From the NCBI RefSeq assembly GCF_001194135.2, contig NC_068990.1:88365180-88429179 (forward strand): a stretch of DNA of 64,000 bases, written 5' to 3'. The translations under genes were made by a program, and so were the position numbers. Below the pieces are notes generated by a model, which ran no database searches, was not told where the DNA came from, and saw nothing but the letters and a program-made list of their open reading frames with translations. Positions 10,400-63,906 of this stretch are shown here, piece after piece; the first letter of the stretch is position 1, and each line of letters begins with the position of its first letter. The DNA comes from Octopus bimaculoides (Eukaryota).

Positions 10400-13300
10400 N
10401 NNNNNNNNNNNNNNNNNNNNNNNNNNNNNNNNNNNNNNNNNNNNNNNNNNNNNNNNNNNNNNNNNNNNNNNNNNNNNNNNNNNNNNNNNNNNNNNNNNNN
10501 NNNNNNNNNNNNNNNNNNNNNNNNNNNNNNNNNNNNNNNNNNNNNNNNNNNNNNNNNNNNNNNNNNNNNNNNNNNNNNNNNNNNNNNNNNNNNNNNNNNN
10601 NNNNNNNNNNNNNNNNNNNNNNNNNNNNNNNNNNNNNNNNNNNNNNNTTTATGCAATGTATGATCCTAGACAACCCACTGACACCCACCCCATGAGGAGG
10701 ACTCAAGCCATATCCAACCTGAATAATGACATACATACAAACACACTTATGTGCATGGGTTATATCTGTGTGCAAATTTCTTCCATTTATTTCACTCTAT
10801 ATATTTCCTTGTAACATTGTCATATCCTCATTTTCACCTTCCTCCCAACATACATGCAGCATCAATATTTGTTCCTGTTATCATTTCCAGTTTACTCAAA
10901 GATTGATTGTGGAACTCCAAAAGATGTTGTTGGTGCATTCAAGTTGTACAATACCACCACCTATGAATCTGAAGTGATCTATACTTGCTCAAATGGAGAA
11001 CAACTAAAGTCAGAATGTGAAAAGGACAATAAATGGAGTTCTGTGGCATCTGTTTGTAACGGTAATGTAAATAATTTCTCTCTTGTCACCGTCTGTGTAA
11101 TTTAGTGTAATTTTGTGTGTTAAATGGATTTGTCATAGAAAGTCTGGTTGATTCTATGACAATTTCCACTGTGTTTGTGGCATGTGGGAGGAAGAGAGGA
11201 ATCTAGTAGTGTCAGCCTACAAGTCCTCCCCAAATACTTGCAACAGGTTGTACAGTGATAATCTACTTGGAACACTAAATTTTATAGTTGCTGTCATCTG
11301 TTTTTACACACAGTATATATATATACACACACACATACTGTGCCGATGGCACGTAAAAAGTACCATCCGAATGGGGTCGATGCCAGGTCCACCTGACTGG
11401 CCCATGCCAGTGACTTGTAAAAAGCACCAACCAGTCGTGACTGACGCCAGTACCCCCTGACTGGCTCCTGTGCCACTGGAACTCAAAATGCACCATCTGA
11501 ACATGTTCGTTGCCATGTCCACCTTATTGACTCCGGTGCTGGAGGCATGTAAAAAACACCAACCAATCATGACCGAAGCCAGTACACCCTTATTGGTTCC
11601 TTTGCTGGTGGCACATAAAAAGCACCATTCCAACATGATCGTTGCCAGATCCGCCTTACTGGCATGTAAAAAGCACCAACTACACTCTCGTAGTAGTTGG
11701 CATTAGGAAGGGCATTCAGCTGTAGAAACTCTGCGAGACAAGATTGGAGCCTGGTGCAGCCGCTGACTCTCCAGACCTCAGTCAAACCATGATGATGATA
11801 TATGTATATACTAGCTCAGTGATGCAAACAGGAAAACTGCACTCAAAACATCTATATTTAAAAGTTATCTTTTATGAAGATAATGCTATAAAAATTTCAT
11901 ACCTACATACACACGCACGTGTGTGTGTGTGTGTGTGTGCATATTTCTATAAATATATACATGTTCATCTGTGCATTTTTTCTCTCCACTTTTCCTGGGA
12001 AGGTCGTGTAGTGAAATCTACAGGTATCTCCTTCAGATTTTCCTATTAGAAGCAATTGTCATTAGATATTCTGACTCAAACTATGGATATTATCAAACAT
12101 CACATTCTCAATCAACCCTTAGTTCTCCTGTTAGTGCTAAATGTACATAAATAAAATAATGTGGTACTTATTTTTTCTTTCTTCACGTTCTTCAACTTGT
12201 TAATGAAATTTATTTCTGCAATTATGAAACTGTATTTCTTATAGCGGTTAAAAGAACACGAATCTTCAACATACATGCACGCGTAAAATGTTCGTTAGCG
12301 TTTCAGAGTATATATTTCTCGCTATGGTGCTTATGTAGCTGGAGTCAGGATTTATGTATAATGATAACACTTGTAAGTAAGTTATAAGTGACGTGTTTAT
12401 CAATGTATATTCCTACTTTGAAAGTAAACTATATTTATTATCTATTTCCAAATAGGAAACATATAAAAGTAGTGTTACACAAACAGTAATCAGACGCAGC
12501 TATAAAAAGTGGTCATCGACTATCTTGTCCCACTCAATATCTTTTATATCAAGTTTATCTCCTCATTCTTTCCCTCCTAATATACATGCAGCATTTGTAA
12601 ACATCTCAGTTTTCAATTACAGATTATACACAAATAAACTGTGGAACTCCAAAAGCTATTGCTAATGCAATGAAGTCTTATAAAACCACCACCTATAAAT
12701 CTGAAGTGACCTATACTTGCCCAAAGGGAGAAAAGTTCAAGTCAACATGTGAAAAGGACAACAAATGGACTCCAGTAGCTTCTGCTTGTAAAGGTAATGT
12801 AAATATTTTCTCTCCCGTTGTCTTGGTCTGTTTGTTAATATTTGATTTTTGCATTAAATGTTTTTGTTAACAGAATACTGGCTGACTTCATGACAATTTC
12901 CATAGTGTTTTTGGCTGGTGGGAGGAAGAGAAGGAACTGTCCTCAGACCAGAGATCTCTCCATATGCTTGCAACAAAGTGAACTCCATTAATACTAGCCA
13001 AGGGCCTGGTAATGCTGTTAAATTAGGTGATTTGAACTGATAGACTAAACAGCATGAATACCCACTATAAAAGAAATATACTTGAAATGTAATTGTCGTC
13101 GTCGTCGTCCTCCTCCTCCTCCTCCTCCTCCTCCTCCTCCTCCTCCTAGACAATGCCGCAGTTCAGAATGTGCATGTTGCCCTAATGAAATCCTTCCTCA
13201 TCCCTCTTACTCTCCTGACCTTGCACCATCTGACTTCCACTTCTTTCAAACCATGAAGTCTTTCTTGAAGAGGAAGCAATTTTTGAATGATAATGAATTT

Positions 13301-14832
13301 ATTTCCTAGGTAAAGTCTATGCTCCAGATGCAACCTACAGACTTCTACAGACGAGGTCTTCACAACTGCACAACGCAATGAGAGAAGTGTGTTACCACTG
13401 GTGATGGCTATGTAGAGAAGGACTAATAATGATGCCAAGTTTTGTTTATCCCAGTCCCTGGGAAGTGGGTGAAGGGAAATCTTTAATGAATACCCCTCGT
13501 ATACTAATTCACAAGATGATGATGAAAGTGAAATTATCTTTGTGTTCTAAGGCAAAAACAGTAATGTCATGAATTTTGCTGTGGCTTGCCATATTTAGTT
13601 ATATCCTTTTATATTCTGGGTTTAATATTTTTAACAGAATGTATTTTGCTTTCAATACTTCTGATGTTGATAAAAGAAGTGCTAGTGAAGAAATGAGGTT
13701 ACTTTATATTCATGTATCCTCACTGCAAAATGTGTGGCAATATGCTTATATGAAGAACTGCTACCAACAATATTGTTACCATCAACAATAATTATAATTA
13801 CATTGTTGTTTAGGGTGATGTATTCACAGAATCATTCTGGCTTCAGACAAAATGTGTTGTATTTTTCTAAATCTTTGACTTTTGAGTACAAATCTTATTA
13901 ATGTTAATTTTCCCCTTCCAGGGGCCAATAAAATGTAGGGGCCAATTTAATTTTATTGGTCCTTTCAGGGCCAAATTAATTAATTAGCCCCAACCTCAAA
14001 CTTTTGGCCTTCTTTCTATGTGAGAAATTAATAGTATTGTTGTTATTTTTCATTCTTCTCTATTTTATTTTGACTCTAGATATTCAGATCCATTTTGTGA
14101 AAGTAAAAGATGCAGCCCTGGATGTAACTGAGAAAACATTATGGAGTAAGGAAAAAGTAACAGCAGATGCATGTGCTGAAAAATGTTTTTCTGACAAAAG
14201 TTGTGTATCATTTGAAATAATAAAAGCAAGTGGACTCTGTTACTTATTAAAAAAAACTGCAGCTTCCTCCAAAATAAAAACAGACCAAAGTAGAGATTAC
14301 TACCAACGAGTAAAATGTAATTATTCTTTGTATTTTATTATTGGAATTCCCTTTTCCATTTTTTTCTGATATTTCTGATTCCATTCCTACTTCATAATAT
14401 ATAGACAACCATCCCTTTAAAGATAGAGAGATTTACCAATAAGGGCAGATATAAAGACATTGCTGCAAAAAAAAAAAAAAAAAAAAAAAAGAAAGAAAGA
14501 AAGAAAACAGTAAAAGGAAGTGTATACTGTTAAGGTATTCCAATATGGCAAATGTTCACCTTGAACAATTTTAATGCTTATTTTCATTTTCTTTTATCTT
14601 CTTTGATGTTCTTTTACATGTTTGAATCATTGGATTGCCGTGTACCCAAACCACTTACCAAGATGTTAAATGATGATGATATATGCATGGCTATGTGGTA
14701 AGAAGCTTACTTCCGAACCACATGATTCTGGGTTCAGTCCTGCAAGGTACCTTAGGTGTCTTCTACTATACCCTCAGGTTAACCAAAGCCTTGTGAGTGG
14801 ATTTGGTAGATGGAAACCAAAAGAAGCCTGTC

Positions 14833-14886
<54 letters not shown>

Positions 14887-16575
14887 TTGGAAATGGATAT
14901 GTGGCATTCAATCAAATAATAATAATAAATGATATATACATACGTATGCATATATACACACACACACATATGTACATACATACATATATTTGTATATAGG
15001 TATGCATATATGGATACAGTATGTCACAAAATGTACCCAACATGAAATACGAAAATAACATTGAGTGCGCAAAGAATGAGAGGAACAAATGGAAAACAAG
15101 ACAAGAATTTTCTTCCAGCATTTGCTACCTTACCTTGTCTGAGCCTAACGGCCTTCCCTATTTGTATTCGTTTGGTTTGTTGTATGTCCTGTTTTTGTTA
15201 CCAACTTTGACCCTCTGCAAATACCCAATTTTTTAATTTCGGTTCATGGGAGCAACTGCCTTCAAAGTCTTGCTCTTGGAGTTCAAGGAAATCTTGGACA
15301 GTAGGGTTCCTCAATTATCCCTAGAGGCCTTCCTGTATCAGGAGGGCCACATCTCTATCAACCACCCTGCCATATTTTTTTTAAAAACCTTTGTTTGCTA
15401 TGCATATGTCCCTTCATTTTCAGTATATGCTGTGTATACTTACTTTCTTTCTCTCTTCCATTTTTTAAAAATCATTTCCTTATATGTAAATCCCCACAAT
15501 TTATGTCTGTCTTTGTATTGAACACCCCCATCCTTCACTCTTGTGGCAAATAAATGAACTCATTACTATTATTAATCATCATGAGACATTGTTGTTGTCA
15601 TCATCATCATTATTATTTCATAGATATTTTAAAAGTATTAGATAATTATGTAGAAGTACAAGTAATTGAAATTGTAATTTTGAATAAAATATGAGAAAGC
15701 TATCTCATGCTTTGTTGTTTAAATGGACAAACAAATCCAGCCACAAAATAGTTTTTCAGCATAAGACACCCTTCTCAGAATTAATGTGAATTCTAGTACA
15801 TCATGAGACATGCTTCAAACTTTACCCCAGAGCTTAGGTTGTTCATACTCCATTTGTATATCCCTCTCTCCATGGTGTGTTTTGTTGAAGACTGAATGGC
15901 CATAGCAACACTTGATACATGGTTTGACCACCTGTTTAGGGGAGAGTTGACCCTACAAAATTACATTACTTAAAGAGAGCTGTACAGATGTATTGTAGAA
16001 GAACAAGTGTTATCTGGAGCCTAAGTATTGAGACAAGGTTTCAAATAAGTCTGAAGATGTTCTACAACTCATATGCATTCTGATTTGCATGTCATTTTGT
16101 GAATCAATTATTTGTTGATAATAAATTATCCATTTACAAACTTATACTCTGCTTGCTTTACAATATTTGTGTTTGGGTGTGTTTGGGCAAGTTGATGAGC
16201 ATAAAATGTATATCTTGGTTTCTTTTTCTTTTACCAGCTGACGAGCCCTTGAAGCTTAAGCAAGTTAATATACCAAAGGCTGTTATTTTAGAACAGCTTA
16301 AAGATAAGACCTTAAATGAGTGTAATGAAGCTTGTCAAGAATATGAAGGATGTAATTCTTATGAGTACAATGAGAAGGATAAACTGTGTGGTCTAAGCAA
16401 TGTGACACAGTTGACTGGTGAACTTAAACCCAACATTGGAAATTGGGATGTTTATATCATTAACCCAGGTCAGCAGAGTATTTCTATTTTATTTATGTGT
16501 GATTATGTCTGTGTGTATTTACATATATGCATCTGTAGGAAAATATACATACATACATACATACATACATACATG

Positions 16576-16647
<72 letters not shown>

Positions 16648-19600
16648 TTATAGAAAAACAAAAGATGAAGTGAGGTGTATGAACAACAAGGAGAAAATAA
16701 ACAGAGAGAGAATGAAAAAAGCCTGTAGATTGAGCGGTCAAGCATGGCGACTGATTAGAAAAAAGTTTGAAAGAAGAGGTTGGAAGAAAGGGAAATGATA
16801 AAGTATGGTGATCCCACAGGAAGGTGCATTTGCATGTGTGTGTGTGGAGTGGTGAAGAGTGGGGTGGGATAGTAGCAATGAAGAGAGAAGGTGGGTAGGA
16901 GTGAGACATGGTCTATGATTACAGAGGACATACGAAGGCTGGGAAGAAACAAAACCAACCTGCTCTGCTGGATGTGCATGTATGACAGAGAATAAGTGAT
17001 TTGAGATAAATATTGGGTATATAGCCTATCATATGTAGAGTGCAACAAGAGAAGACTGTACTAGTATTGTCATGTGATGTGTATAGATGAGGACATACTA
17101 GAGAGATAAAGTACACATTGGAAGACCATACATGTTCCGGAAAAACTCTGCTCAAGTAACACAAAAATGGATGACTCAATTTTCATGACCTCATAACTTC
17201 TAACATTTGGTCTTGAAACTCTCCAGATCTCAATCCATTGGCCTATGTGTAGAGCATTGTTGAGAGAGAGAGCAATCAACATCCCCTTAACATCAAGGAT
17301 TCCTTGAAAGCCACCATAGTCAGAGTAATGTCCAATATGAACCATCACCATTTCATTCAGGTATGTGGACAATTCAGATCTTGCAGAAAAGTAGTTATTG
17401 ATGCTGAAGGTTGCTATATTCATTAAGAGTATAAAGATAAACAAGCTTATATATAGAAATGTTTTGTTAATAAAGTTGTTTACTGTTATTATATGTATGT
17501 TTTTCTATGAAACAAATTCTTAAATACCTTACACGTCCTATATATACAGATGTGTGTGAGTGTATACATATATGTGCCTATTTCTATCTGTGTACATGTT
17601 TCTTCAGTATGTTTCAGTCAATATAATTTATTCCAAATTTGTCATTATCTCCTCATGTTTACCCTCCTCCTAACATATACTCACCATTGATACCAATTTC
17701 TTTTGTCATTTCCAGTTTTTACAAGAGTTGATTGTGGACCACCAAAAGACATTGCTGGTGCTTCAAAGTCCTATGAAACCACTACCTATAATTCTGAAGT
17801 AATCTACACTTGTCCAGAAGGAGAAAAATTAAAATCGATATGTGCAGATGACGATAACTGGACCCCAGTAGCATCTTCCTGTAAAGGTAAGGAAAATAGG
17901 CTCTCACTTGTTGCTTGTGTCTATGTAATTTTGTTTTATTTTTGTGTTGAGTATTTTTGTCAGAGGAAGAATTGTTGTGTCCATGACAATTTCCATTGCA
18001 ATAGTGGCTGTTGGAATCCTTAATTATAATAATACAAATAATAATAATGATGCTTTCTAATTTGAGCAAAGAAAACCAATAATTTTCAATGGATAACATT
18101 GAGTTAGTATCATCAACTCCAGTTCTTGACTGGTATGTTATGCTATCGGCCTTTGCAAGAACGAAAGACAAAGTTGACACTGACTGGATTTGAACTGAAC
18201 AAATGAAGATCCTGTATAGCTATCATAAAGAATTTTTATTCTAATTCTGTAATTAGTATACATGTATCCATATGATGTACTCAGTGTAATGTATGGACAC
18301 ACAAGAAGTACAGTGGAATAATAGGAAGGTTATTGGAGAAAGTAGTGTATGTGGAAATGCCTGGGAGTCATAAAAACAAACTGATACCCAGGAAATTGAT
18401 TTTCTCAAATTTCCTAGAGGCTCATTAGAGTTAGTGGATAATTTCTGCTACCTAGGGGACCATATTAGTAGTGGGAAAGGATGTATGGAGAGTGTAGTAG
18501 CTAGAATAAGGATAGGATGGAGAAATTCATAGAGCTTTTACCTCTGTTGACAAACAAAGCTTTTTCTCTCCAAGTGAGAAGATTGTATAATGCATGTATA
18601 TCGACAGCAATTCAACATGGTAGTGATATATGGGCCCTAAATGCAGAGAACATGTGAAGGCTTGAGAGGAATTATTGATTAACTCCTACCTTAAATTTTT
18701 GTCCTTTCTATGTTAGAAATTATTATTATTCTTATTGTTTTTGACTTACATTCGTCTAAATCTTACTTCAATTCCAGTTGCTGAGCTGCATTTTGTGAAA
18801 GTCACAGATGCAATTCTGGATGTATCCGGAAAAATTTTGGTCAAGGAAAATGTAACCATAGATGCTTGTGCTAAAAAATGTTTGGATGATTCAAAGTGTT
18901 TAGCATTTGAAATAACTAAAGGAAGTGGAAATTGTTACTTATCTCAACAAACGGCAGCTTCCACTAAGAAAATTAAATCAGACAAAAGCAGAGACTATTA
19001 CCAACGAATAAAATGTAATTATTATTTGTATTTTATTATTGCTTTTCTTTTTCCTCTTTTTCTGAAATTTGTGAATCCATTTGTACTTCATAGTATATAG
19101 ATAACGATTTCTGTAAAGACATTGACAGATTTACCTATAAGGACAAGCATAGTTGTGTTCCTGAAAAAGATAAAACAATATTAGGAACTGTAAATACTGA
19201 GGGTATTCTCATACAGAATTTGTTCACTTTGAACAATTTTATGCATGTTTACAATAATTCTTTTTTATACCAGAAAGGAAACTCTTGTTGTTTGCCTTAA
19301 ACTTGAATAACTGCATCAGTGGTGGTAGTAGTGGTGGTGGTGGTGGTGGTCGTCGTCGTCGCCGTCGTAGTAGTAGTAGTTGCTGCTGCTGCTGCTGTTG
19401 TTGTTGTTGTTTCCAATTTCAGCCAAATAAAAGCAGATTGAATCAGTGTTAATCAATACAATCAGTCCTAATTCTTGTCTGGTATTATATTGTATCAACC
19501 CTGAAGCAATGAATGGCAAGGTTGACATTAACAGAGTTTGAGCTCAGAATGTAGTAAACTGGAGGGAATACTACAATGTGGCATGGCTTATGCACGTTAT

Positions 19601-21722: not shown

Positions 21723-21775
<53 letters not shown>

Positions 21776-23215: not shown

Positions 23216-23277
<62 letters not shown>

Positions 23278-23780: not shown

Positions 23781-23836
<56 letters not shown>

Positions 23837-32800: not shown

Positions 32801-32915
32801 ACTCAGTTGACTACTGAAATTAAACCCAACAATGGAGGCTGGGATGTATACATAATTAATCCCGGTTAGTAGAGTGTTTTATCTTAGTCATTGTGTGCAT
32901 GTTTTTGTGTATAAA

Positions 32916-32964
<49 letters not shown>

Positions 32965-41286: not shown

Positions 41287-41320
<34 letters not shown>

Positions 41321-43273: not shown

Positions 43274-43336
<63 letters not shown>

Positions 43337-55300: not shown

Positions 55301-56154
55301 GTACTACACCACTTCTTAATCAAATTCATTCTACACAGTAAGAAGTGTTTCTTTCAGATCTGCCTCATTTGATTATGAGATAGCTGAGATAGCTGGGCTT
55401 GAGGCAGGCCAAACTTTCTTGTCTCAAAAACTGCAAAAATACCATTTTTGCGTAAAATTTGAGGTGTGAGCTTGGACACTGTCCTGGGTGAAGACATACC
55501 TATTTCCAAATGTTTCATTTAACCAAGGCAACATGTTTCTGCCAACATTTTAATGTAAACTGTGCCATTCACATTAACAACCTCATAAATGAAGATCAAA
55601 GGTGACTTGGATCCATTGGATCTTGCAGCAACCCACACCACAACCCCATCTGGTTTCAGATGACAAAAATGGATTCAGCACCTTTCATGCAAGTCCTGAG
55701 CATCAGCAGCATACAACCTGTTATTTTGTCTGTTTCAAACAGCCTCCACTGTGAAGATCTTCTTTTCATTCTCAATGAAGCCTTTGTATGTAGCACTGTC
55801 GAGTCATTTTTTTCTTTGAAGCTGCTGAAATTAATTGTCTGGGTTGCTTTTTGTATGCCTTTAGCCTGAGATCCTCTTTAGCACTCTTGTGAATTGAAGA
55901 TTTTGAAATATTAAGTTCTCTTGCCATTTTTCACATACTTTGACAAGGATTCCTGTGAACTCTCTTTCTCAAAGTATCAATCATAGGTTTGGTGTGAACA
56001 GTTCTTTTACACTCTGGAGATGGCTTGCTTAATGTCATGCCCAGATTGATTGTAACATTTACAGACATTATACACTGTCTTATACACAGTGTCCTTTCAC
56101 AAAAACTATGCATCACATACTTTATAACATTTAATATATTTCTTTGGAATTGTG

Positions 56155-56215
<61 letters not shown>

Positions 56216-59200
56216 AAGTGTTTATGTTTCAGTACCAAATGTATTTCTTGTTTCCTGTTTTATTTTTTCAGCCAGTCAAGAATTTTTTATATTTAGAAAA
56301 GTTAGCATGCCTTGGCAAGTTACTTTAGGACAGATTACAGGAATGAGCTTAAAGAGGTGTAATGCAACTTGCCATCAATATCCTGGGTGTCACAGTTATG
56401 CATACAAGCAGGAAAATAAGGTCTGTGTATTGAGTAGGATTACTCAGTCGAGTGATAAACTTAAATCCGACCAGGGAAGTTGGAATGTAAACATAATGAA
56501 CCCAGGTCAGTTGCGTATTTTCATCTTATTTATTGTTTTCATCTTATTTATTGTTTTCATCTTATTTATTTTGTGCATCTTATTTATTGTTTTCATCTTA
56601 TTTATTTTGTGCATCTTATTTATTGTATTTTCATCTTATTTATTGTGTATTTATATCATCATCATCATTTAACCATTTCATTACTATATTTCTGACCAAA
56701 ATACACCCCTCATGAGTTTCAATTAAATTCTAAAATAATCATGAATTTAGACTAGTTTCATTAAACAACTGTACCCTTTTTTTACTTATCAACATATTAA
56801 TGTGACATTTGGAACATAATTGAAGAAAGGGTTCTTAATCAATTCTATTGCATAATTTTTGTCTCAAAGTGACTCTAATTACAGGTAAACCCAGGTAAAC
56901 TGAGCAAAATGTAAAAATATTAAAATTTTGTTTAAACATTATCATAGAAAATGAGTCATCTGCTAATATTTAATTGGGTATGCAACAAAATTTTGATATA
57001 GAAGAATTGTGCACATCACTAGATTATCAGTTGAATTTAATACACAGAGGAACAGGTGTACCATAAAGGTAAAATAAACTGAAATACTGGAATTTGTTTT
57101 TGAAGAAAACTAGAAAATTAAATACATCAACTAAATGAAATATACTCACACACATACATGAATACACAGGAACATATATAATAAAGATTTACAATAGAAG
57201 TTAAATCAAAACTCGTCACTCACCTTATAAGTAAATTAAAATTATAGGTTAATTAAGATTACAGGTAAATTAAAATAAAAAGTAAAACTAAGTAAATTTG
57301 AAAAATATTTATACAATCTAATTATACATATATACAAACAATATTCACACAATATTTCTATCATGGAAAGTTGTAAAACATCCCACGCTACATACTGCAA
57401 CCTTGCAGAATGCACATTGGAAAGACGTTTCAATTGGCTGTCCACTGGGAGTTTTTCTTTGTTGATGTAGACATTCACAGCACCGTCTTTTGCGACCCCT
57501 GATTTTTTCTAATTTATGTAGATCAGTTGAACTTAGAGGAATATCTCTCTGGCAGGCTTTGCTTTTCCTTCCTGCAGTTATTTTTTGGAGGAATAACCTG
57601 CCCTCAACTGTATTGCTATATCTGCTCAGAACTGCAGATGGTTACACTGCTTGCGAACCCCTCCTGATTTGGTATATAATATAAATACATTTACAATGCT
57701 CATGTTTACTATATACCAAACCAGGTATTGCCACCATTTATTACCCGGTCTACCAACCGGATAATAACTCATCATCTGGTTCAGCCGATCCACACCGTCC
57801 ATGTACCTGTTATAATCAAGGTTCCCAAACGGGGTGCCATTTTCATCTACACATGGTTGTGCACTGGTAGATAGAAAATTTATCTGCCTCTTATCTCTGT
57901 ATGCAGTTGCTAGCAGATATCCTTTCTGCCGTTGAATTATTTCACCTCTTTTTTTTAAATTTTGCTTTTTTTATATCCAACGGCAGCCCTTTTCTACTAG
58001 CGATTACTGTAGCACATGTATACATTGCCACAGCTTCTAAATCCACTGCAAGTTTGCCTGAACTAAAAAATCGGTCAAAAAATAATATATGGCCCTGGTT
58101 ATGGTATGGAAGTGATAATTCCAGACCACATCGTACTCTAGGCCATGCTGACTAACATTATTGTTAGTCAGCTGTAGAGACCATGCCAAATGACACTAGA
58201 GTCTGGTGCAGCCCCTCCGTTTATCATCCCTCGTCAAACCAGCATAATCAATGGATGTTAAAAGATGGTACAGTATTATATATATTTTTGTAAAAATGAG
58301 TAGAGATGTTTTTTTGGTGGGGAAAATTTTAATTTTAATCTTGATAATGTTTAAATTGAGTTACTGTGATATGAGTTTCAAGCTTCAAAGAGCCATTTTC
58401 AAACTGAAAAATGTATGTTTTACTGGTTGCTTAAATAGCAAAAGATATTTTTCTTACAAGTATACATAAAAAATATATACACATATAGAAAAAAAGGAAA
58501 AGCAAAATATTTATAAAAAAATACAAAATCATGAAGAACAACAACATAAGAAAAGAAGAAAGAAGATGAAGAAGAAGAAGAAGAAAAAAACAAATGAAAT
58601 CAAGAAAAAATAAAAAGGAATATATAAATAAAAATAAAGATAAGACTAATAGTAATTGAGAACAGTGGAGAGGAGAGTTAAGTCCATCAAGAATAAAGAA
58701 ATAGAATATTTTGGAGTGGTCAATATTGTTGTGTTCTTGTCAAAAGAATATATATGTACACACACACACATCATGTATATACACTCACACACAAACATAC
58801 ATAGTTACATAGACACACATATGTATACTTTTATATCTGTGCAAATATCTACGTTTAGTGTAACATTGTTTATTATCTCATTCTCAGCCACCTATGTCAA
58901 TTTCTCTCTTCAATTCCAGGTTACTCAAACATTAACTGTGGACCTCCAAAAGATGTTTCTGGTGCAGTGAAGTCCTACAGAACCACAACCTATAAATCTA
59001 CAGTCATCTACACTTGTCCAAATGGAGAACAGCTAAAGTCAGTATGTAATATGGAAAGCAAATGGACTCCAGTTGCATCTTCCTGTTTTGGTAGTATAAA
59101 TAGCTTCTCTCTTGTTCTTTCTATCTGTTTTTATGCTAAATGTTTTGTCTGAAGAAGACTGGCTTACACTTCGTGAATTTCTAGTGTTTCTGGCTAGTGG

Positions 59201-62200
59201 GAGGGAGAGAACTAGTTATCCTCAGAGCAGAGACCTCCCCAAATGCTTGCTGCAGTAGATTCCATTAATTATACCCAAGGGCAACATAATTCTATGAAAT
59301 CAGATAATGGATTAAGTTTACCAACCAAGAGTTGGAAGTGTAGAAACTTGTTGTCTCCAGCAATCTTTGATATAGTTCACATCCACTAAATTTCATCCAC
59401 AAGCTTAGTTGTGAACCAAATTCTTAACCACACAGATAAAACTCTTAATTTTTCTCTTAATTTCTAACTTTGTCTTTCTCATCCATACTTTGTGTCATCA
59501 GTTGAAACCCAGCACAATATAATGCCCTGAGTCCTTCTTTACTAAAACTCTGCAATCCTCTGAAACAGACATCTGATCCTCATGTTCTTTTCCAGTACAC
59601 TATAACACCAATAATAAAAAATTCCCAATTGACACACAAAGACAAAAAATTTAGATAGTAGTTTAGTCAATATCATCAACCTTACGATTTGACTGGTAAT
59701 TTATGTCATGGGCACCTACAGGTACGACAGGCAATGTTGACTTTCATTTCATTTGAAGTGATATTCGAAAGAGCCTGAATATATAACATACAGCATTGCT
59801 TCCAGTTCTCTAATTAGTACACATGTATACATTGAAAATAAAAATAAGGATGATGATACAGTTCTCTCAATGAAGAAGGATCACTCTAGGATCAGTTGAA
59901 GAATCCTACCATCAAAGATCACCACAAACTCCATGGACATGTATCTTCTCCAGTTATTGCTCTCAGACCAACACTTTTAGCTCACTTTCAATAATTTGTC
60001 TTGAGGACCATACCTTCCTCTCTATCCTCAACTTCTTTACAAGTGAAATTTGTAAATGCAAATTAGGGATTATCTAAAGAGGCAAGTTACTGTCATCTGA
60101 CATTTTGAAACTCCTCCACCTTGCAATCTCTTTTTCTACCACTGCCACACAGAGGAAAACCATCTTCTCTGCCCAATTAAAGGAGATGGACTTGACTGAT
60201 AGGTTGATCCATTCCACTCACAACAGCATGTTTGACATAAATGCACAAGTGAACAATACATGGATGATGACAGAGTACATACAAAATGATTTTTCTATAC
60301 TGCTGACATCTTGGGCAAGCTTGTCTAATGGCACTTCCATGTCATGTATCTTCATTGCAGAATACGTGGCCTTGTGTTCAAGTTAGAAACCATTAAATTT
60401 AATATTGTTACTATGAACAATACTTATAATTATTCTTGTCTATCAGACAAAATGTGATGTAGTATTTGTTCTGACCCTAACTTCTGAGTTCAAGCCCTGC
60501 TGATGTTAATTTTGCCCATTTAGGGCCATTAAAATAAAATGGCATTCATGTGTTGAGGCCACTTTAGCAGACGAATTCTAATCTCAAAATTTTGGCCTTC
60601 TTTCTAGGTTAGTAATTTTTTTTTTCTTGTTATATTTCATTCATCTAAATTTTGCTTTAACACTAGATACTGTGACGATCCATTTTATAAAAATAAGCAA
60701 CGCATATCTGAGTGTACCTAAGAAAACATTGTGGAGTAAGGAAACTAAAAGAATAAAAGGCTGTGCAGAAGTATGTTTTTCTGACAAAAAATGTTTATCA
60801 TTTGAAATAATTAAAAAAAGTGGACTATGTTACTTATCAAAGGAAAGTGCAACTTCTACCAATGAATTAAAGTCAACCAAAGATAGAGATTACTACCAAC
60901 GTTTAAAAGGTAATTATTGTTTTGTATTTTATTATTAGATTCTTTTTACATCTTCTGAAATTTATGATTCCTTTTGTACTCATAATACATAGACAACCAT
61001 TTCTGTGAAGATATTGACAGGTTTACCTCTGAAGACAGGCATAGACATATTCCTGAAAATATGTCAGAAAGTGAAAATATTGTTACAGCATTCTGTGGGA
61101 AAGGAAAATCCCATATTCTTAAACATGAGCAGCAGCAACAGTAGCAGTAGTGGCAGCAATAGCAGTAGTAGTAGTGGCAGCAGCAGTTGCTGTAGTCATA
61201 GTAATGGTGGCTGTGGTGTATCTGTAGATTTTATGATACCTGTGCATTTTCCACATATAAACACTACTGTCTCTCTTAACCTTCCTATTATTCTACTGTA
61301 CCTCTTGTGTGTCCATAGCTTGCACTGGGTACATCATATGAAATTCCTGCCTACTTCTTTCCTACTTATCAAACAGGGCCATTTAACTGAAGCAGGTAGG
61401 AACCTGTCTGTTTCTTGCTTACGAGAACCTTGGTCTTTGCTAAGTTAAACTTAAGGCCTTTTGATTCCAGGTTTTTCTTCCACACCTGGAATTTCTTTTT
61501 CATTTCTGTTCCAGAATCTGCTATGAGAACACCATCAGTTTGTAGTTTCCAAGAGCAGCCAGTTTTGAATTCCTCTGTTATTGCCAGAGGACAGTGATGA
61601 ATAGGAGGGGACTGAGAGTCAAGCCCTGGTGAATGTCTGCTTGTACACTAAATTCATCACTGACTCATGGTTAACTCTTACATTACCGTACATGGCCTGT
61701 ACAGCTTTCACAAGATACTCTTCTACCCCTAGCTTTCTCAGGGTCCACCATATCACACAACAGGGTACTCTATCTAAGGTTTAAAAATATATATATATAT
61801 ATTTATTTATGTATGTATGCATACACACACACACACACACACATATGGTGGGTTGTGTATTTGTTTCTGTGTGTAACTAAATATTAATATTTTCATGTAC
61901 ATTCTCTCTCTTGAAACTTTGTTTTCTGTCATTTTGACTGATATTTTTGCTGTTGACTGCTATTTCTAGCTGATTACGTGCTATGTCACCCGATTTGACA
62001 AAATATGACTAGTCCATTTTTCACAGGGATGAAACTGGAACTGTTGATAAAGGCAAACTTTACAAGTGAAAACTCTTTTGGTCAACAACAACAGCACTCT
62101 TTGTGAAGGAGAACAGACAAGAAAAAGTATACAAACAAATAACAACACTGACAATAAACAAACTGTAAACACTCCAAAGTTTCTTATGTGTGATTTGACA

Positions 62201-63406
62201 GACAATGTTAACACATCAAAGACTATGTTCGACACAGAAAGAAGCAACAGCAGTAACAATAACAACAACAAAAACAACAACGATGAAAGAACTGACAAAC
62301 AAGCCTGCATAAAGGCTTTTAAAAAGATGTCTCTCTTATGTTAGGGCCACCAAGTCCCTCTCTTTAAAGAATCGAATTCTCTAAAGAGGAAATTAAAGAT
62401 GCTGGACAGTTAGTTGAATGAAATGGACTGTCAAATTCAACACCTCAGCTGATACTATCCAGAATACATCATGTCACACAGTAACATACCGTACAATTAG
62501 GTCGGAGGGCAGAATGAGCCACCAAGGCTCAAATTCAAAAGGAAGCAGATAATGATAGCATAGGTTGTCTGCAATTTAAAGTAGTTGATTTCACATACAA
62601 CAAACTTGTGATCTGTACACTCAACTTGAATAAGCTTCATAGACAGGGACTGGTCACTGGAAGCTAAATGCATTCTTGCCAGTTCTCCAAGCTTTCAGAG
62701 ACTGTATAAGTGAATTAAACTGGCATTGATGGGGGAAATTGTCAACAATAAATGGTGGTTTGCTTTGATAATGGTGATCAGAATAGAATCGATAAGTTTA
62801 ACAAAGAACTAGCAGTAGAAAGAAATAGAGCAGAGGCAGAGGCAGAGCTAGTAAGGAAGTTAGATGATGTATTTAGACAAAGCATTGCAACCAATGTACT
62901 TGCAGTGAGATTGGCACTCAAAACACAAAGGCTGCACTGTCAAATCTAATATATATGCTCTTAGGCATGAAGGGATGAAAGCCATTCAGTGGACCTGAGT
63001 GGCAGAGACACAGTGTGGAAATAAATCCACATTTCTGATCTTTACTGGACTACAATGGGAACATGGTAATCGATCCCAAGCAGATGTGTGTGGCTCTTTA
63101 ACAGCATTTCACTCAACTGTTAGAGAGTGGTGGTGAACCGGATCACAGGATTGTTGTTGTTGCTGTTGTTGTTGTTGCTGGTGTTGCTGTTGTTGCTGTT
63201 GTTGTTGTTGCTGCTGCTGTCGTTGCTGCTGTTGTTGTTCTTGTTGTTGTTATTGTTATTGTTGCTGCTGCTGTTGTTGCTGCTGCTGTTGTTGTTGCTG
63301 TTGTTGTTGTTGTTGTTGTTGTTGCTGCTGCTGCTGTTGTTGTTGTTGTTGTTGCTGCTGCTGTCGTTGCTGTCGTCGTTGTTGTTGTTGTTGTTACAGT
63401 TGCTGT

Positions 63407-63437
<31 letters not shown>

Positions 63438-63562
63438 TGTTGTTGTTGTTGTTGTTGTTGCTGTTGTTGTTGTTGTTGGAGATCAATTATTTCTTCATTA
63501 CAAATTGTTTATTTCCAGAATTATGCACCAGATGCTTTGCAATGTTTAATAAATGTGTAGCG

Positions 63563-63611
<49 letters not shown>

Positions 63612-63906
63612 TGTGCGTGTGTGTTTGGGTGGACGAGTATAAAATATATTTCTTGTTTTTCTCTTTTTCCAGTCGCTGAAAAAAATTTGTTGCTTAAACA
63701 AGTTACCATACCAGAGAAGTATGTCTTTAGACGGTTTGGGGACATGACCATAAAGAGTTGTGATGGAGCTTGCCAGCAATATCAAGAATGTAGGTCTTAT
63801 AAGTACAATGTAAAAGATAAACTGTGTGCTTTGAGTGGTTTATCACACGTGACTAATAAAATTATACCTACCAGTAGCAGCTGGGTCATAAGAATGGTTT
63901 ACGCAG
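43..63906 (+). CDS. Multi-exon gene (or tandem gene cluster) encoding a repetitive extracellular protein built from PAN/apple(A)-Sushi/CCP(S)-PAN/apple(B) modules; no clear start or end in the window
   Basis: 32 exons located by hand, all AG..GT bounded, all phase 1-1, lengths multiples of 3, no internal stops. Junction codons in genomic order are sense. Summed length 6765 nt = 2255 codons. Whether they form one transcript is inference. Confidence 0.8.
961..1260 (+). mobile_element. Degenerate 3' end of an RTE-clade (BovB-like) LINE
   Basis: Hand translation with stops gives [40 protein letters not shown], resembling the RTE C-terminal RMxDxRIPKQLLFGEL...RFKDTLK segment. Boundaries approximate. 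Confidence 0.65.
1590..2480 (-). mobile_element. Degenerate RTE-clade LINE, endonuclease to N-terminal reverse transcriptase
   Basis: Minus ORF 1605-1865 [15 protein letters not shown]...[23 protein letters not shown]...[10 protein letters not shown] is the typical pre-RT segment. An APE motif MGDFNARIG reads on the minus strand at ~2262-2288. Confidence 0.8.
3390..3830 (-). mobile_element. RTE-type LINE 3' fragment / associated short repeat
   Basis: Minus [18 protein letters not shown]. Contains the recurrent ctacagctagatgcctttcctaatgccaaccact motif also seen at ~5400, 6390, 11700, 23570, 33500 and 52170. Confidence 0.7.
4244..4414 (+). CDS. Exon S1, Sushi/CCP domain
   Basis: cacttccag|ct acceptor, g|gtaatg donor, 171 nt; not in ORF track. 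[56 protein letters not shown]; 4 Cys plus Trp, CCP pattern. Confidence 0.9.
5146..5185. repeat. (TAT)n microsatellite; many (TA)n, (CA)n, (TAGA)n, (CT)n and (CCT)n tracts occur throughout introns
   Basis: Direct reading, e.g. (TA)n ~6040-6098 and ~16580-16640, (CCT)n ~13110-13147, (CT)n ~23220-23272, (TAGA)n ~23783-23835. Confidence 0.95.
6277..7075 (-). mobile_element. Well-preserved RTE-type LINE 3' end with (GAT)n tail, running into the assembly gap
   Basis: (cat)n at ~6277-6292 followed by the recurrent repeat. The minus strand next to the gap reads [41 protein letters not shown]. Confidence 0.75.
7076..7770. other. Assembly gap (N run); others at 4032-4041, 10400-10647, 50237-50278
   Basis: Runs of N in the sequence. 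Confidence 0.99.
9454..9687 (+). CDS. Exon A2, PAN/apple-like type A
   Basis: ttcttctag|cc, g|gtcagt, 234 nt. [77 protein letters not shown]. Confidence 0.9.
9750..10110 (+). mobile_element. RTE-type LINE 3' fragment just after exon A2
   Basis: gtgagacatgggctttgatcgcagaagacatgagaagactagagagaaatgaa ([17 protein letters not shown]). Homologous pieces at ~16900, 22250, 32985 and 50530. Confidence 0.7.
10891..11061 (+). CDS. Exon S2, Sushi/CCP domain
   Basis: catttccag|tt, g|gtaatg, 171 nt. [56 protein letters not shown]. Confidence 0.9.
11340..11800 (+). mobile_element. Recurrent RTE-associated 3' repeat with internal sub-repeats (aaaaagcacc units) and (GAT)n tail
   Basis: Repeated gcatgtaaaaagcacca units, then gttggcattaggaagggcattcagctgtagaaactctg and a gatgatgat tail. 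Confidence 0.65.
12623..12793 (+). CDS. Exon S3, Sushi/CCP domain (second of a doublet)
   Basis: ttcaattacag|at, g|gtaatg, 171 nt. [56 protein letters not shown]. Confidence 0.9.
13150..13500 (+). mobile_element. Mariner transposase C-terminal fragment
   Basis: [32 protein letters not shown] contains the mariner YSPDLAPxD catalytic-aspartate motif. Confidence 0.85.
14080..14316 (+). CDS. Exon B1, PAN/apple-like type B
   Basis: tgactctag|at, t|gtaatt, 237 nt. [78 protein letters not shown]; C-x3-C-x5-C-x11-C. Confidence 0.88.
14686..14886 (+). mobile_element. tRNA-derived SINE with (TA)n tail
   Basis: tggctatgtggtaag...gggttcagtcc A/B-box-like head, body ccaaagccttgtgagtggatttggtagatggaaac, TA tail. 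Reverse copies at ~27700-27870 and ~53745-53890. Confidence 0.75.
16238..16468 (+). CDS. Exon A3, PAN/apple-like type A
   Basis: ttttaccag|ct, g|gtcagc, 231 nt. [76 protein letters not shown]. Confidence 0.9.
17716..17886 (+). CDS. Exon S4, Sushi/CCP domain
   Basis: catttccag|tt, g|gtaagg, 171 nt. [56 protein letters not shown]. Confidence 0.9.
18330..18680 (+). mobile_element. RTE-type LINE fragment in the S4-B2 intron
   Basis: Reads approximately [11 protein letters not shown]...[26 protein letters not shown], an RTE post-RT segment also seen at ~22130 and ~50390. Confidence 0.65.
18778..19014 (+). CDS. Exon B2, PAN/apple-like type B
   Basis: caattccag|tt, t|gtaatt, 237 nt. [78 protein letters not shown]. 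Confidence 0.88.
21324..21557 (+). CDS. Exon A4, PAN/apple-like type A
   Basis: tttctctag|ca, g|gtcagt, 234 nt. [77 protein letters not shown]. Confidence 0.9.
22120..22630 (+). mobile_element. RTE-type LINE 3' fragment
   Basis: ORF-track peptides [14 protein letters not shown]...[10 protein letters not shown]...[10 protein letters not shown] and [17 protein letters not shown]...DGTCGKGR. Confidence 0.8.
24564..24734 (+). CDS. Exon S5, Sushi/CCP domain
   Basis: caattccag|at, g|gtaaca, 171 nt. [56 protein letters not shown]. Confidence 0.9.
26536..26772 (+). CDS. Exon B3, PAN/apple-like type B
   Basis: taactctag|at, t|gtaatt, 237 nt. [78 protein letters not shown]. Confidence 0.88.
27700..27870 (-). 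mobile_element. tRNA-derived SINE (reverse orientation)
   Basis: Reverse-complement homology to the 14686 element (aaggctttggttggccc...tagtagaaggcacttacccaaagtg...accatgtggttg). Confidence 0.7.
27981..28211 (+). CDS. Exon A5, PAN/apple-like type A
   Basis: tattttcag|ct, g|gtcagt, 231 nt. [76 protein letters not shown]. Confidence 0.9.
28486..28656 (+). CDS. Exon S6, Sushi/CCP domain
   Basis: tcactttag|tt, g|gtaatg, 171 nt; not in ORF track. [56 protein letters not shown]. Confidence 0.9.
30230..30466 (+). CDS. Exon B4, PAN/apple-like type B
   Basis: tgactctag|aa, t|gtaatt, 237 nt. [78 protein letters not shown]. Confidence 0.88.
30547..30960 (+). mobile_element. Mariner element terminal fragment with inverted-repeat end, inserted ~80 nt after exon B4
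   Basis: ta|cgagggtaggctgaaaagttcatag terminal sequence, similar to the end of the 43965 element (gaaggtcagctgaaaaattcatag), which carries a mariner transposase fragment. Confidence 0.6.
31330..31620 (-). mobile_element. RTE-type LINE endonuclease N-terminal fragment
   Basis: Minus [14 protein letters not shown]...[18 protein letters not shown] matches the APE endonuclease start (xNV...xQETRW). Confidence 0.75.
32631..32864 (+). CDS. Exon A6, PAN/apple-like type A
   Basis: ttcttccag|tc, g|gttagt, 234 nt. [77 protein letters not shown]. Confidence 0.9.
32960..34055. mobile_element. Two RTE-type 3' fragments (plus at ~32960-33350, minus at ~33385-34055) filling the A6-S7 intron
   Basis: Plus: [17 protein letters not shown]. 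Minus: [27 protein letters not shown]...[17 protein letters not shown]. Confidence 0.75.
34104..34274 (+). CDS. Exon S7, Sushi/CCP domain (first of a doublet)
   Basis: tatttccag|tt, g|gtaatg, 171 nt; not in ORF track. [56 protein letters not shown]. Confidence 0.9.
35798..35968 (+). CDS. Exon S8, Sushi/CCP domain (second of a doublet)
   Basis: caatttcag|tt, g|gtaaca, 171 nt. [56 protein letters not shown]. Confidence 0.9.
37125..37364 (+). CDS. Exon B5, PAN/apple-like type B
   Basis: taattccag|ac, t|gtaatt, 240 nt. [79 protein letters not shown]. Confidence 0.88.
38535..38765 (+). CDS. Exon A7, PAN/apple-like type A
   Basis: tcttttcag|ct, g|gtcagt, 231 nt. [76 protein letters not shown]. 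Confidence 0.9.
39586..39756 (+). CDS. Exon S9, Sushi/CCP domain
   Basis: cacttccag|tc, g|gtaatg, 171 nt; not in ORF track in this frame. [56 protein letters not shown]. Confidence 0.9.
40775..41011 (+). CDS. Exon B6, PAN/apple-like type B
   Basis: taattctag|tt, c|gtaatt, 237 nt. [78 protein letters not shown]. Confidence 0.88.
42920..43153 (+). CDS. Exon A8, PAN/apple-like type A
   Basis: cttttctag|cc, g|gtcagc, 234 nt. [77 protein letters not shown]. Confidence 0.9.
43965..44560 (-). mobile_element. Mariner transposase fragment with terminal inverted-repeat end
   Basis: Minus [18 protein letters not shown]...[22 protein letters not shown] contains mariner-like HQDN and YSPDL motifs. Confidence 0.85.
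45239..45412 (+). CDS. Exon S10, Sushi/CCP domain with a one-codon insertion
   Basis: aaattctag|tt, g|gtaatg, 174 nt; not in ORF track. [57 protein letters not shown]. The indel preserves frame. Confidence 0.9.
48136..48375 (+). CDS. Exon B7, PAN/apple-like type B
   Basis: taattccag|tt, t|gtaatt, 240 nt. [79 protein letters not shown]. Confidence 0.88.
49590..49810 (+). mobile_element. SINE (second family), ~110 nt upstream of exon A9
   Basis: caaaatgcttagtggcatt...cattctgagttcaaattcc...gtcaactttgctttcatc...gataaagtaaatacc. Older degenerate copies lie upstream of most B exons. Confidence 0.65.
49920..50153 (+). CDS. Exon A9, PAN/apple-like type A
   Basis: tttttccag|cc, g|gttagt, 234 nt. 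[77 protein letters not shown]. Confidence 0.9.
50350..50960 (+). mobile_element. RTE-type LINE fragments (3' segment followed by a pre-RT segment)
   Basis: [24 protein letters not shown] and [49 protein letters not shown] similar pre-RT piece lies at ~24090-24250. Confidence 0.85.
51162..51332 (+). CDS. Exon S11, Sushi/CCP domain
   Basis: cacttccag|tt, g|gtaatg, 171 nt; not in ORF track. [56 protein letters not shown]. Confidence 0.9.
52095..52310 (+). mobile_element. Apparently young copy of the RTE-associated 3' repeat with (GAT)n tail
   Basis: gcacccactacactctcggagtggttggcgttaggaagggcatccagccgtagaaactctgcc is a near reverse complement of the 6300-6460 copy; CpGs retained. Confidence 0.75.
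54767..55006 (+). CDS. Exon B8, PAN/apple-like type B
   Basis: taattctag|ct, c|gtaatt, 240 nt. [79 protein letters not shown]. Confidence 0.88.
55380..55900 (-). mobile_element. Degenerate Tc1/mariner-superfamily transposase fragment
   Basis: Minus strand reads [31 protein letters not shown]...KVWPASSP, matching FQQDxAPAH...WPxxSPD. Subfamily (maT-like) is a guess. Confidence 0.65.
56272..56505 (+). CDS. Exon A10, PAN/apple-like type A
   Basis: ttttttcag|cc, g|gtcagt, 234 nt. [77 protein letters not shown]. Confidence 0.9.
56515..56650 (+). repeat. Short tandem repeat of catcttatttatt(g/t) units directly after the A10 donor
   Basis: About six copies of (tt/gtg)catcttatttatt. Confidence 0.85.
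56670..58260 (-). mobile_element. piggyBac-family transposon remnant in the A10-S12 intron
   Basis: Minus strand: [48 protein letters not shown] (PGBD core) and [11 protein letters not shown]...[20 protein letters not shown] (C-terminal Cys-rich domain). ttaa|ccatttc at ~56670 resembles a TTAA target with a terminal repeat; the other end was not identified. Confidence 0.85.
58920..59090 (+). CDS. Exon S12, Sushi/CCP domain
   Basis: caattccag|gt, g|gtagta, 171 nt. [56 protein letters not shown]. Confidence 0.88.
60667..60909 (+). CDS. Exon B9, PAN/apple-like type B
   Basis: taacactag|at, g|gtaatt, 243 nt. [80 protein letters not shown]. Confidence 0.88.
61590..61785 (-). mobile_element. RTE-type reverse transcriptase fragment
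   Basis: Minus strand reads approximately [29 protein letters not shown]...HQG..LSPLLFI (frameshifted). Confidence 0.75.
63148..63480. repeat. ~330 nt compound (GTT/GCT)n trinucleotide tract in the B9-A11 intron
   Basis: Direct reading; produces the spurious poly-Leu ORF 63127-63549. Confidence 0.95.
63673..63906 (+). CDS. Exon A11, PAN/apple-like type A
   Basis: tttttccag|tc, g|gtcagt, 234 nt. [77 protein letters not shown]. Confidence 0.9.

Follow-up and report, generated by a model that had tools for sequence, protein, structure and literature searches.

The stretch of DNA analysed here (the window; 64,000 nucleotides of Octopus bimaculoides chromosome CM046610.1, positions 88,365,180–88,429,179, assembly GCA_001194135.2) lies inside what is probably a very large gene built of tandemly repeated exons. 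It is AT-rich (~35% G+C), dense in microsatellites, and interrupted by four N gaps. By tblastn and profile (hidden Markov model) searches, 32 exons were located on its forward strand, each encoding a single domain: 11 encode a PAN domain of one class (A), 12 a Sushi domain (S), and 9 a PAN domain of a second class (B), and they recur as A–S–B triplets, the repeating units (U) of the array (Table 1). All 32 have an AG acceptor and a GT donor, are of phase 1-1, and have a length divisible by three (171–243 nt); when computationally spliced, the predicted joining reads through 2,254 codons without a stop. Nucleotide profiles of the exons and their flanks, run over the window, revealed no additional or decayed exon copies, neither a degenerate second Sushi exon in U10 nor a B exon of U1 outside the neighboring gap. 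An initial annotation had placed a higher-order repeat, a block of four triplets duplicated at least twice, between positions 12623 and 63906. These limits coincide with the acceptor of S3 and the donor of A11; the array itself reaches far past A11, and past the window on both sides.

Table 1. Units, blocks, gaps, and repeats in the window (positions in the window; a–d, unit types).
Feature	Position	Strand	Content
Block 1	43–27980	+	U1(a), U2(b), U3(c), U4(d)
U1(a)		+	A1 43–273, S1 4244–4414, B presumably within N gap 7076–7770
U2(b)		+	A2 9454–9687, S2 10891–11061, S3 12623–12793, B1 14080–14316
U3(c)		+	A3 16238–16468, S4 17716–17886, B2 18778–19014
U4(d)		+	A4 21324–21557, S5 24564–24734, B3 26536–26772
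Block 2	27981–49919	+	U5(a), U6(b), U7(c), U8(d)
U5(a)		+	A5 27981–28211, S6 28486–28656, B4 30230–30466
U6(b)		+	A6 32631–32864, S7 34104–34274, S8 35798–35968, B5 37125–37364
U7(c)		+	A7 38535–38765, S9 39586–39756, B6 40775–41011
U8(d)		+	A8 42920–43153, S10 45239–45412, B7 48136–48375
Block 3, partial, more diverged	49920–63672	+	U9(a), U10(b, single Sushi)
U9(a)		+	A9 49920–50153, S11 51162–51332, B8 54767–55006
U10(b, single Sushi)		+	A10 56272–56505, S12 58920–59090, B9 60667–60909
A11 (PAN)	63673–63906	+	Opening exon of U11, no clear subtype
Assembly gap, 695 N	7076–7770		Likely covers the B exon of U1 (collinearity with L001)
Assembly gap, 42 N	50237–50278		Within intron A9>S11, no exon touched
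66/132-nt tandem repeat	11416–11658		Related copies near 6337–6801 (+), 11570–11815 (−), 51879–52253 (−)
Interspersed repeat	22133–22450, 50413–50737		Also 35447–35656 (−); common to introns A4>S5 and A9>S11
Mariner-type transposase fragment	44393–44569	−	Intron A8>S10
piggyBac-like transposase remnant	57348–57970	−	Intron A10>S12
(TTG)n microsatellite	63151–63478		Intron B9>A11

Both PAN classes match the PAN/apple family (PF00024; PAN_1, E = 1.2e-32; 112 bits, the cutoff being 21.4; four stretches recognized in a two-unit query), and each contains four invariant cysteines. The S exons (171–174 nt, phase 1-1) encode a short Sushi/CCP domain, with a score of 20.1 bits (E = 8e-4; PF00084 cutoff, 20.7 bits). 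PF00084 is also listed for the homologues among their precomputed Pfam annotations, and the Sushi invariants C83, C109, C119, W125, and C132 are conserved. The AlphaFold2 model of one triplet had a mean predicted local distance difference test score (pLDDT) of 82, and of 86–94 across the greater part of the two PAN regions, which each consist of one long helix plus strands; residues 77–133 (Sushi) form β-strands only, at a pLDDT of just 68–79. The top Foldseek matches in the PDB were the apple domains of factor XI/prekallikrein and Toxoplasma gondii MIC4, the PAN lectin of S. muris, and the N domain of HGF. Judged by sequence and modeled fold, the gene in the window is predicted to encode an extracellular PAN/apple–Sushi/CCP–PAN/apple protein. 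A match to the methyl-CpG-binding domain (MBD) within S5 (24.0 bits against a cutoff of 21; 26 residues, 308–333 of the U3 + U4 query) was dismissed as most likely a spurious short hit; the same family also appears in the precomputed annotations of two further proteins, P0002 and P0007.

That the closest relative of an exon usually lies four units away, as initially proposed, holds for the A exons. On the amino acid level, the best partner of 7 of the 11 A exons is found at a distance of ±4 or ±8 units. In a permutation test over unit labels, pairs four or eight units apart (lags 4 and 8) exceeded the remaining pairs in identity by 5.9 percentage points at the nucleotide (p = 0.0004) and 9.7 points at the amino acid level (p = 0.0008). 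The best pairs are A1/A5 (67% amino acid identity), A3/A7 (66%), and A4/A8 (64%); A9 is nearest to A1, A10 to A2 (amino acids) or A6 (nucleotides), and both A2 and A6 are nearest to A3. The distances between A exons four units apart, recalculated from the splice-defined exon starts, exactly matched those given before (A3–A7, 22297 nt; A4–A8, 21596 nt; A5–A9, 21939 nt; A6–A10, 23641 nt; A7–A11, 25138 nt). Likewise, all sequence motifs quoted as shared between such exons were found where they had been placed, but two of them are not specific for a subtype: KDKLC also occurs in A6, and what A3 and A11 have in common is a weak motif only.

For typing, the exons of blocks 2 and 3 were compared, by mean identity, with reference exons from block 1 and from a paralogous region further upstream (L001, see below); 15 of 19 were assigned the type predicted by a period of four (binomial p ≈ 1e-6, with a rate of 0.25 expected by chance): A5, A7, A8, A9, A10, S7 to S12, B4, B7, B8, and B9. 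A6, S6, and B6 missed the predicted type, and B5 resulted in a tie. In all 1000 bootstrap replicates, A5 was typed a, A7 c, and A8 d; in block 3, support was 91% both for A9 as a and for A10 as b, 74% for B8 as a, 76% for B9 as b, 52% for S11 as a, and 86% for S12 as b.

Bootstrapped neighbor-joining trees grouped units i and i + 4, as had been anticipated, for the d, a, and c clades of A exons, with uneven support for b and with A11 remaining outside. In the protein tree, A4, A8, both d copies of L001, and the copy from O. sinensis formed a clade at 82%, and A1, A5, and a of L001 one at 78%; A3 joined c of L001 at 90% (60% after addition of A7), and A2 joined b of L001 at 99% (40% after addition of A10). 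A second set of trees, based on the exons plus 200 nt of flanking sequence, paired L001 with block 1 of the window at 99–100% for nine exons and at 52% for S2, recovered a wider d-type clade including two copies from the 3′ end of the array (L003) at 94%, and united A2, b of L001, and A6 at 64%. As regards the four A subtypes, which the initial annotation took to be functionally distinct, the sequences show that subtype-specific residues persist across blocks and species, with dN/dS at 0.44–0.85 (see below); the d-type motif CD(R/Q)SN(V/A)THL(T/S)H, together with W(G/A)WD downstream of it, is kept across blocks, in distant parts of the array (the d-like units of L003), and between species. Architecture follows the same rhythm, units with two Sushi exons recurring at U2 and U6, whereas U10 has a single one.

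A11 had been considered a c-type partner of A3 and A7, which could not be upheld. Its identity to every other A exon is 25–38%, its type is ambiguous (a 53%, c 46%), it groups solely with its O. vulgaris orthologue (100% bootstrap), and in the overlapping downstream locus (L002) it is followed by S, S, and B. As A11 is not of type c, block 3 is incomplete. Of the copies that the initial annotation had envisaged, the window thus contains two full ones (U1–U4 and U5–U8) and a third that is diverged and partial (U9, type a; U10, type b).

Further copies of the block are present 37–83 kb upstream. The protein model P0002 maps to L001, a locus of that chromosome whose end is separated from the start of the window by 37.4 kb. 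The notion that L001 and P0002 represent the orthologue of another species was rejected, as L002, from the same assembly (GCA_001194135.2, CM046610.1), opens with exactly the 10,107 nt that close the window; L001 is, therefore, a paralogous part of the array. Its exons are arranged as [S,S,B] [A,S,B] [A,S,B] [A,S,B] [A,S,S,B] [.. S ..] [A,S ..]; each is nearest to one exon of U1–U4 (67–94% amino acid identity), in the order (b c d)(a b c d), and both b-type units, one of them cut by the start of the locus, have the two-Sushi architecture. L001 is collinear with positions 4–24,750 of the window twice, at 80–93% nucleotide identity, including the intron sequence that flanks the exons. In O. sinensis, one locus (L004) contains units c, d, and a in that order, with much longer introns, and a second one (L005), ~450 kb further along CM016867.1, contains a, d, a, d, and a b-like unit.

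Synonymous divergence (dS; Nei–Gojobori, concatenated A + S + B) between L001 and block 1 is 0.11–0.22, and between units of L004 and their counterparts in L001 0.14–0.19. Pairs of units at lag 4 within the window range between 0.30 and 0.64 (mean ~0.47), adjacent units between 0.33 and 0.75 (~0.55); the ratio of nonsynonymous to synonymous divergence (dN/dS) is mostly 0.44–0.85. The d unit of L004 is 83–87% identical to the second d unit of L001, through the introns, and 80% identical to A4 of the window. As it is closer to the former, the split between L001 and block 1 should be at least as old as that between the species; by these estimates, the younger round of block copying would date from roughly the time at which O. 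bimaculoides and O. sinensis separated. The same data make it scarcely conceivable that the blocks are an assembly artefact, i.e., uncollapsed haplotypes or scaffolds mis-joined at N gaps. Such gaps do exist, four in the window and a total of 6.5 kb of N in L001; however, the copies differ by 7–35% in DNA sequence, which we judge to be far above allelic divergence, dN/dS below 1 and intact reading frames in all copies indicate separate, constrained exons, and the same order of units is found in the independent assembly of O. sinensis, where L004 and L005 are free of N.

Several observations weigh against a block of four as the unit of copying, or against its reach. Unlike the A exons, the S exons showed a weak effect in the permutation test (+2.7 nucleotide and +4.2 amino acid points; p ≈ 0.026), with a period of 2 fitting equally well, and the B exons by themselves showed none (+0.2 nucleotide points, p = 0.39; +2.4 amino acid points, p = 0.15), so that beyond the weak S signal neither class has a significant period of four on its own. 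The best partners of the S exons are scattered, with S7 and S8, both in U6, being mutually closest; the tightest group of B exons, B1/B3/B7, cuts across types (b, d, d); and A6 is not typed b at the protein level. Chained alignments of introns yielded 65–80% identity for nearly all pairs of units, and thus little resolution, lag 2 is almost as frequent as lag 4 among the best-matching tiles of the window (see below), and dS at lag 4 is only modestly lower than that between adjacent units. Finally, the models deposited at NCBI divide the array into several genes. Of the remaining B exons, B4 and B8 form a pair and the others are ambiguous. S7 and S8 share 83% of nucleotides and 77% of amino acids, whereas S2 and S3 of U2 (78% and 62%) are not each other's closest relatives; U6 may have undergone local gene conversion or a duplication of its own.

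Taken to the extreme, the star-like or inconsistent relationships of the B and S exons and of most introns could mean that no block was ever duplicated, the locus being a plain tandem array of triplets in which similarity at four units arose by chance or by convergent selection on the A domains. We regard this as very improbable: neither the A-exon permutation result (p < 0.001) nor the 15 of 19 exons typed as predicted (p ~1e-6) is expected from it, A2 and A6, and likewise A3 and A7, are each other's best match in non-coding flanking sequence, L001 remains collinear through introns (80–93%), and the order of units is kept in O. sinensis.

A strong diagonal at 22–25 kb in a self dot-plot had been named as a further hallmark of the repeat. 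Such a diagonal is present, and lag 4 is the most common one, but it does not dominate, which is attributable to neutral sequence being near saturation; this comparison neither clearly speaks for the block nor clearly against it. Self-blastn of the window returned matches at nearly every multiple of the unit, the top one being A3/A7 (956 nt, 72%); B4/B8 (774 nt, 74%), S5/S10, and S6/S11 also ranked high, but so did B2/B7, B1/B3, and B1/B7. When the window was divided into tiles of 300 nt, the best match was at lag 4 for 63 of 232, at lag 2 for 54, and at lag 5 for 36; 21 of the latter 36 are located in A>S introns and likely stem from a repeat common to introns A4>S5 and A9>S11. Among tiles containing A exons, 10 of 14 had their best match at lag 4 or 8. 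Intron collinearity within the window is only patchy. Intron flanks tested alone gave a weak signal, favoring a period of 4 for B (p = 0.018), less so for A (p = 0.07), and not for S (p = 0.56); by this measure, A2/A6 (72%) and A3/A7 are the reciprocal best partners mentioned above. Two procedures were consequently abandoned as arbiters of the array's history: the whole-window self-blastn with its offset histogram, for lack of a dominant 22-kb diagonal, and the collinear chaining of individual introns, which at 65–80% for almost all pairs is too saturated.

The signal at lag 2 permits a different view, namely that the basic unit consists of two triplets and that the period of four results either from a later doubling or from gene conversion between units at a distance of two, which would homogenize S and B exons as well as B>A introns but spare the A exons. 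Among S exons, mean amino acid identity is nearly equal at lags 2 and 4 (64.4% and 64.6%), compared with 58.8–60.0% at lags 1 and 3; B1 and B3 are 87% identical at the nucleotide level, B5 and B7 are best partners, and introns B1>A3, B3>A5, B5>A7, and B7>A9 are mutually the most alignable of their class. The tile counts (54 at lag 2 against 63 at lag 4) and the order a, d, a, d in L005 fit as well. Yet A exons are no more similar at lag 2 (42.7%) than at lag 1 (43.0%) but clearly so at lag 4 (52.9%), the two-Sushi architecture returns every four units rather than every two, the blocks in L001 are collinear across all four units, and the flanks of the B exons favor a period of 4 (p = 0.018) over one of 2 (p = 0.089). 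Gene conversion as the specific cause of the similarity between B1 and B3 found no clear support, since identity over the entire B1–B3 alignment is only ~74%, and is retained as a part of this scenario. A basic unit of two triplets is a possibility that we would not favor, and it is compatible with the copying of four units as an earlier stage rather than as its replacement; the period of 2 in S exons, B exons, and B>A introns points to such an earlier two-unit stage or to gene conversion.

The central proposition of the initial annotation, that a block of four units (a, b, c, d) was copied as a whole, is thus carried by the period of four in the A exons, the typing of 15 of 19 exons, the collinearity with L001, and the order of units in O. 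sinensis. The higher-order repeat is real, has its strongest expression in the A exons, and continues outside the window, and we consider it probable that the window belongs to the interior of a very large gene, specific to cephalopods, that grew by copying a-b-c-d blocks. Triplets would first have diverged into four types lying side by side, b having two Sushi exons. The array would then have grown by unequal homologous recombination between paralogous units, misalignment by four units copying whole blocks of ~22–27 kb. As the exons are phase-symmetric and of lengths divisible by three, copying of a block keeps the frame, and a protein super-repeat of ~850–910 residues would have resulted; the predicted super-repeat of the kind known from titin or nebulin, as originally put forward, is in line with the 1-1 phase of all exons. 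Several rounds occurred, an old one that gave rise to blocks 1, 2, and 3 of the window (dS ~0.3–0.6), and a younger one that separated block 1 from the two blocks of L001 (dS 0.11–0.22). Of the sequence of events proposed before, from triplet to 4-mer to duplicated block, the copying of four units stands, while the path toward it may have been 1→2→4, or may have been blurred by gene conversion, given that S and B exons have an equally strong period of 2. Growth of this kind is an ordinary mechanism, and the repeat adds an instance of a known evolutionary pattern, in a very large octopus gene of which no description was found.

The array spans at least 530 kb, from L001 (88.282 Mb), where a model of 1,133 amino acids runs off the upstream end and the 5′ end of the array is not yet reached, to L003 (88.816 Mb), and at least 28 units were counted in the 184 kb sampled. 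In L003, the last units are followed by four exons for a GON domain (PF08685) at 25256–31492 and then by an unrelated CACHD1-like gene. Within the sampled 184 kb, GON exons were found solely at this 3′ end, ~385 kb past the end of the window, and none in the window, L001, or L002. We infer that all exons are part of one transcript ending in this GON domain. Downstream of A11 (L002 10108–43250), the number of Sushi exons per unit is 2, 1, 2, 2, 1, and the order a-b-c-d is not followed; near the 3′ end of the array (L003 1–25000), c-like and d-like A exons alternate and are interrupted by a unit with two Sushi exons. The higher-order period, judged by sequence, seems to vary from one region of the array to another.

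Alternatively, the locus could comprise a number of individual genes of the PAN–Sushi–PAN type, in which case the higher-order repeat would be a feature of a gene cluster and not of a protein. The models at NCBI have lengths of 709, 761, 1067, 1133, 1865, and 4083 amino acids, and the related proteins of Abdopus, Sepioteuthis, and Acanthosepion are short (359–503 amino acids), three of them being full-length (451–503 amino acids) with a hydrophobic, signal peptide-like N-terminus. Against this speaks that the 64 kb of the window, with 32 exons all of the internal type and of phase 1-1, contain neither a stop codon nor a GON exon nor any match to the signal peptide of the Abdopus protein, and that the boundaries of the NCBI models look arbitrary; a cluster of separate genes is, in our view, rather unlikely. 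Models P0001, P0002, and P0005 look fragmented and in part chimeric: P0005 starts (MVYAG) inside exon A11 and P0001 inside a B exon, and P0002 omits exons adjacent to N gaps and fuses half a B exon to a Sushi exon (…SGLFFAKVDCGPP…). Going further, the whole array of at least 530 kb (CM046610.1, ~88.28–88.82 Mb) might constitute a single transcription unit of ~90 units at 5–6.5 kb each, encoding a secreted, GON-ended protein of ~20,000 residues that grew in octopods from a coleoid gene of the venom-gland type for ~450 amino acids, with periods specific for each region (four here; a, d, a, d in L005; others near the 3′ end). We put this forward tentatively; if true, the product would be among the largest animal proteins.

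The first homology search retrieved octopus proteins and GON-Abd-1 of Abdopus aculeatus (P0008, UniProt R4G2C1) only. Using GON-Abd-1 as the query, P0002 (E = 2e-207), GON-SepT-1 and -2 of Sepioteuthis (E = 3e-123 and 2.5e-105), and one cuttlefish protein were recovered, the short proteins all having between 359 and 503 amino acids. The full-length ones consist of a hydrophobic N-terminus, PAN(B), PAN(A), one or two Sushi domains, and GON, i.e., they display the B–A–S order of the octopus array. The single A domain of the short Abdopus and squid proteins is somewhat closer to A4 and A8 (d type; 43–49%) than to other A exons (24–48%), the margin being small. A profile search with the alignment of triplets returned five short fragments only and did not recover the other O. 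bimaculoides models, and literature searches on the GON domain in octopus or coleoids, on cephalopod PAN/Sushi proteins, and on GON in the posterior salivary gland yielded nothing on this gene. Coleoid GON proteins were reportedly obtained by Ruder and co-workers in 2013 from transcriptomes of posterior salivary (venom) glands. By sequence similarity and domain order, the octopus locus appears to be a massively expanded member of this family. PAN domains generally bind proteins or carbohydrates; the likeliest role of the product would, therefore, be that of a giant secreted, multivalent binding or matrix protein.

Two of the assembly gaps raise the question of a hidden exon. The 42-nt gap in intron A9>S11 begins 84 nt past the donor of A9 and has (TA)n runs on either side (…GCAGTATATATATA[N42]ATATATACATATATATAT…). 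Homology to the flanks of other A exons extends up to the gap, the ~780 nt after it resemble scattered intron repeats on both strands, and the final ~107 nt of the intron resemble the sequence that normally precedes S exons. The most plausible reading of the gap is that of an incompletely assembled, intronic TA microsatellite, possibly plus more repeat. As A9 and S11 are intact and both of phase 1, continuity of the frame does not depend on it, and no exon is expected there by homology, since in other a-type units A is directly followed by S. Only the A6–A10 and A7–A11 spacings span the gap and thus depend on its estimated length. The 695-nt gap in U1, in contrast, most likely hides an exon. 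L001 22972–23492 aligns to window positions 7771–8320 (84%), and the a-type B exon of L001 lies 322–555 nt upstream of that stretch, which projects it to ~7216–7449 of the window; U1 would appear as A–S only because its B exon is located inside the gap.

Repeats and remnants of transposons are scattered over the introns. The piggyBac-like remnant (DDE_Tnp_1_7, E = 1.8e-9, plus zf-Tnp_2; Pfam) accounts, we think, for the great length of intron A10>S12; the mariner-type fragment in intron A8>S10 was recognized as Transposase_1 (E = 3.4e-16). An open frame at 50593–50985, within intron A9>S11, had no match in Pfam. The dispersed element with an open frame that is related to the 66/132-nt tandem repeat is probably an octopus repeat resembling short interspersed nuclear elements, and its open frame also had no match in Pfam. 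The (TTG)n microsatellite (~109 copies, 83% purity) gives rise to long artefactual open frames in all six reading frames.

The locus represents a clear case of hierarchical exon-block amplification, as in titin and nebulin, in a lineage-specific extracellular gene of an invertebrate, with rounds that can be dated to before and around the split between O. bimaculoides and O. sinensis. The current NCBI models (709 to 4,083 amino acids) are fragments of a much larger repeated locus, which matters for gene counts, proteomics, and venom-gland transcriptomics in octopus. Furthermore, the locus is tied to the short cephalopod GON proteins, suggesting a large, octopod-specific expansion of that family, the members of which we take to be secreted proteins of the venom or salivary gland. 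With GON-Abd-1 and with GON-SepT-1 and -2 of Sepioteuthis australis, it shares the order PAN B, PAN A, Sushi, 38–52% identity to the octopus units, and GON at the end of the array. The coleoid proteins, however, comprise 359–503 amino acids and one PAN–PAN–Sushi(×1–2) set, whereas the octopus array has at least 28 units and a window free of GON exons.

In titin (blocks of 7 or 11 Ig/Fn3 domains) and nebulin (blocks of 7 modules), domains in the same position of a block are likewise closer to each other than to their neighbors, and blocks of phase-symmetric exons were duplicated. In the octopus gene, by contrast, the domains are PAN and Sushi, extracellular, and disulfide-bonded, the block comprises four units (12–13 exons), the pattern is blurred in two of three exon classes, and no function as a structural ruler is implied. 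The higher-order repeats of alpha-satellite DNA arose in a comparable way, diverged monomers forming a multimer that was amplified by unequal exchange, and they, too, have younger and older copies along the array. Copies of satellite higher-order repeats are far less diverged than the octopus blocks, which are 65–93% identical, coding, intron-rich, and ~22–27 kb long. The PAN/apple fold and the tandem use of binding domains are shared with factor XI/prekallikrein (four apple domains), Toxoplasma MIC4 (six), and the Sarcocystis lectin SML-2 (Foldseek E = 7e-6 to 7e-4). Compared with these multi-apple proteins, the octopus gene encodes no protease domain, its PAN domains alternate with Sushi domains, and its copy number is larger by orders of magnitude.

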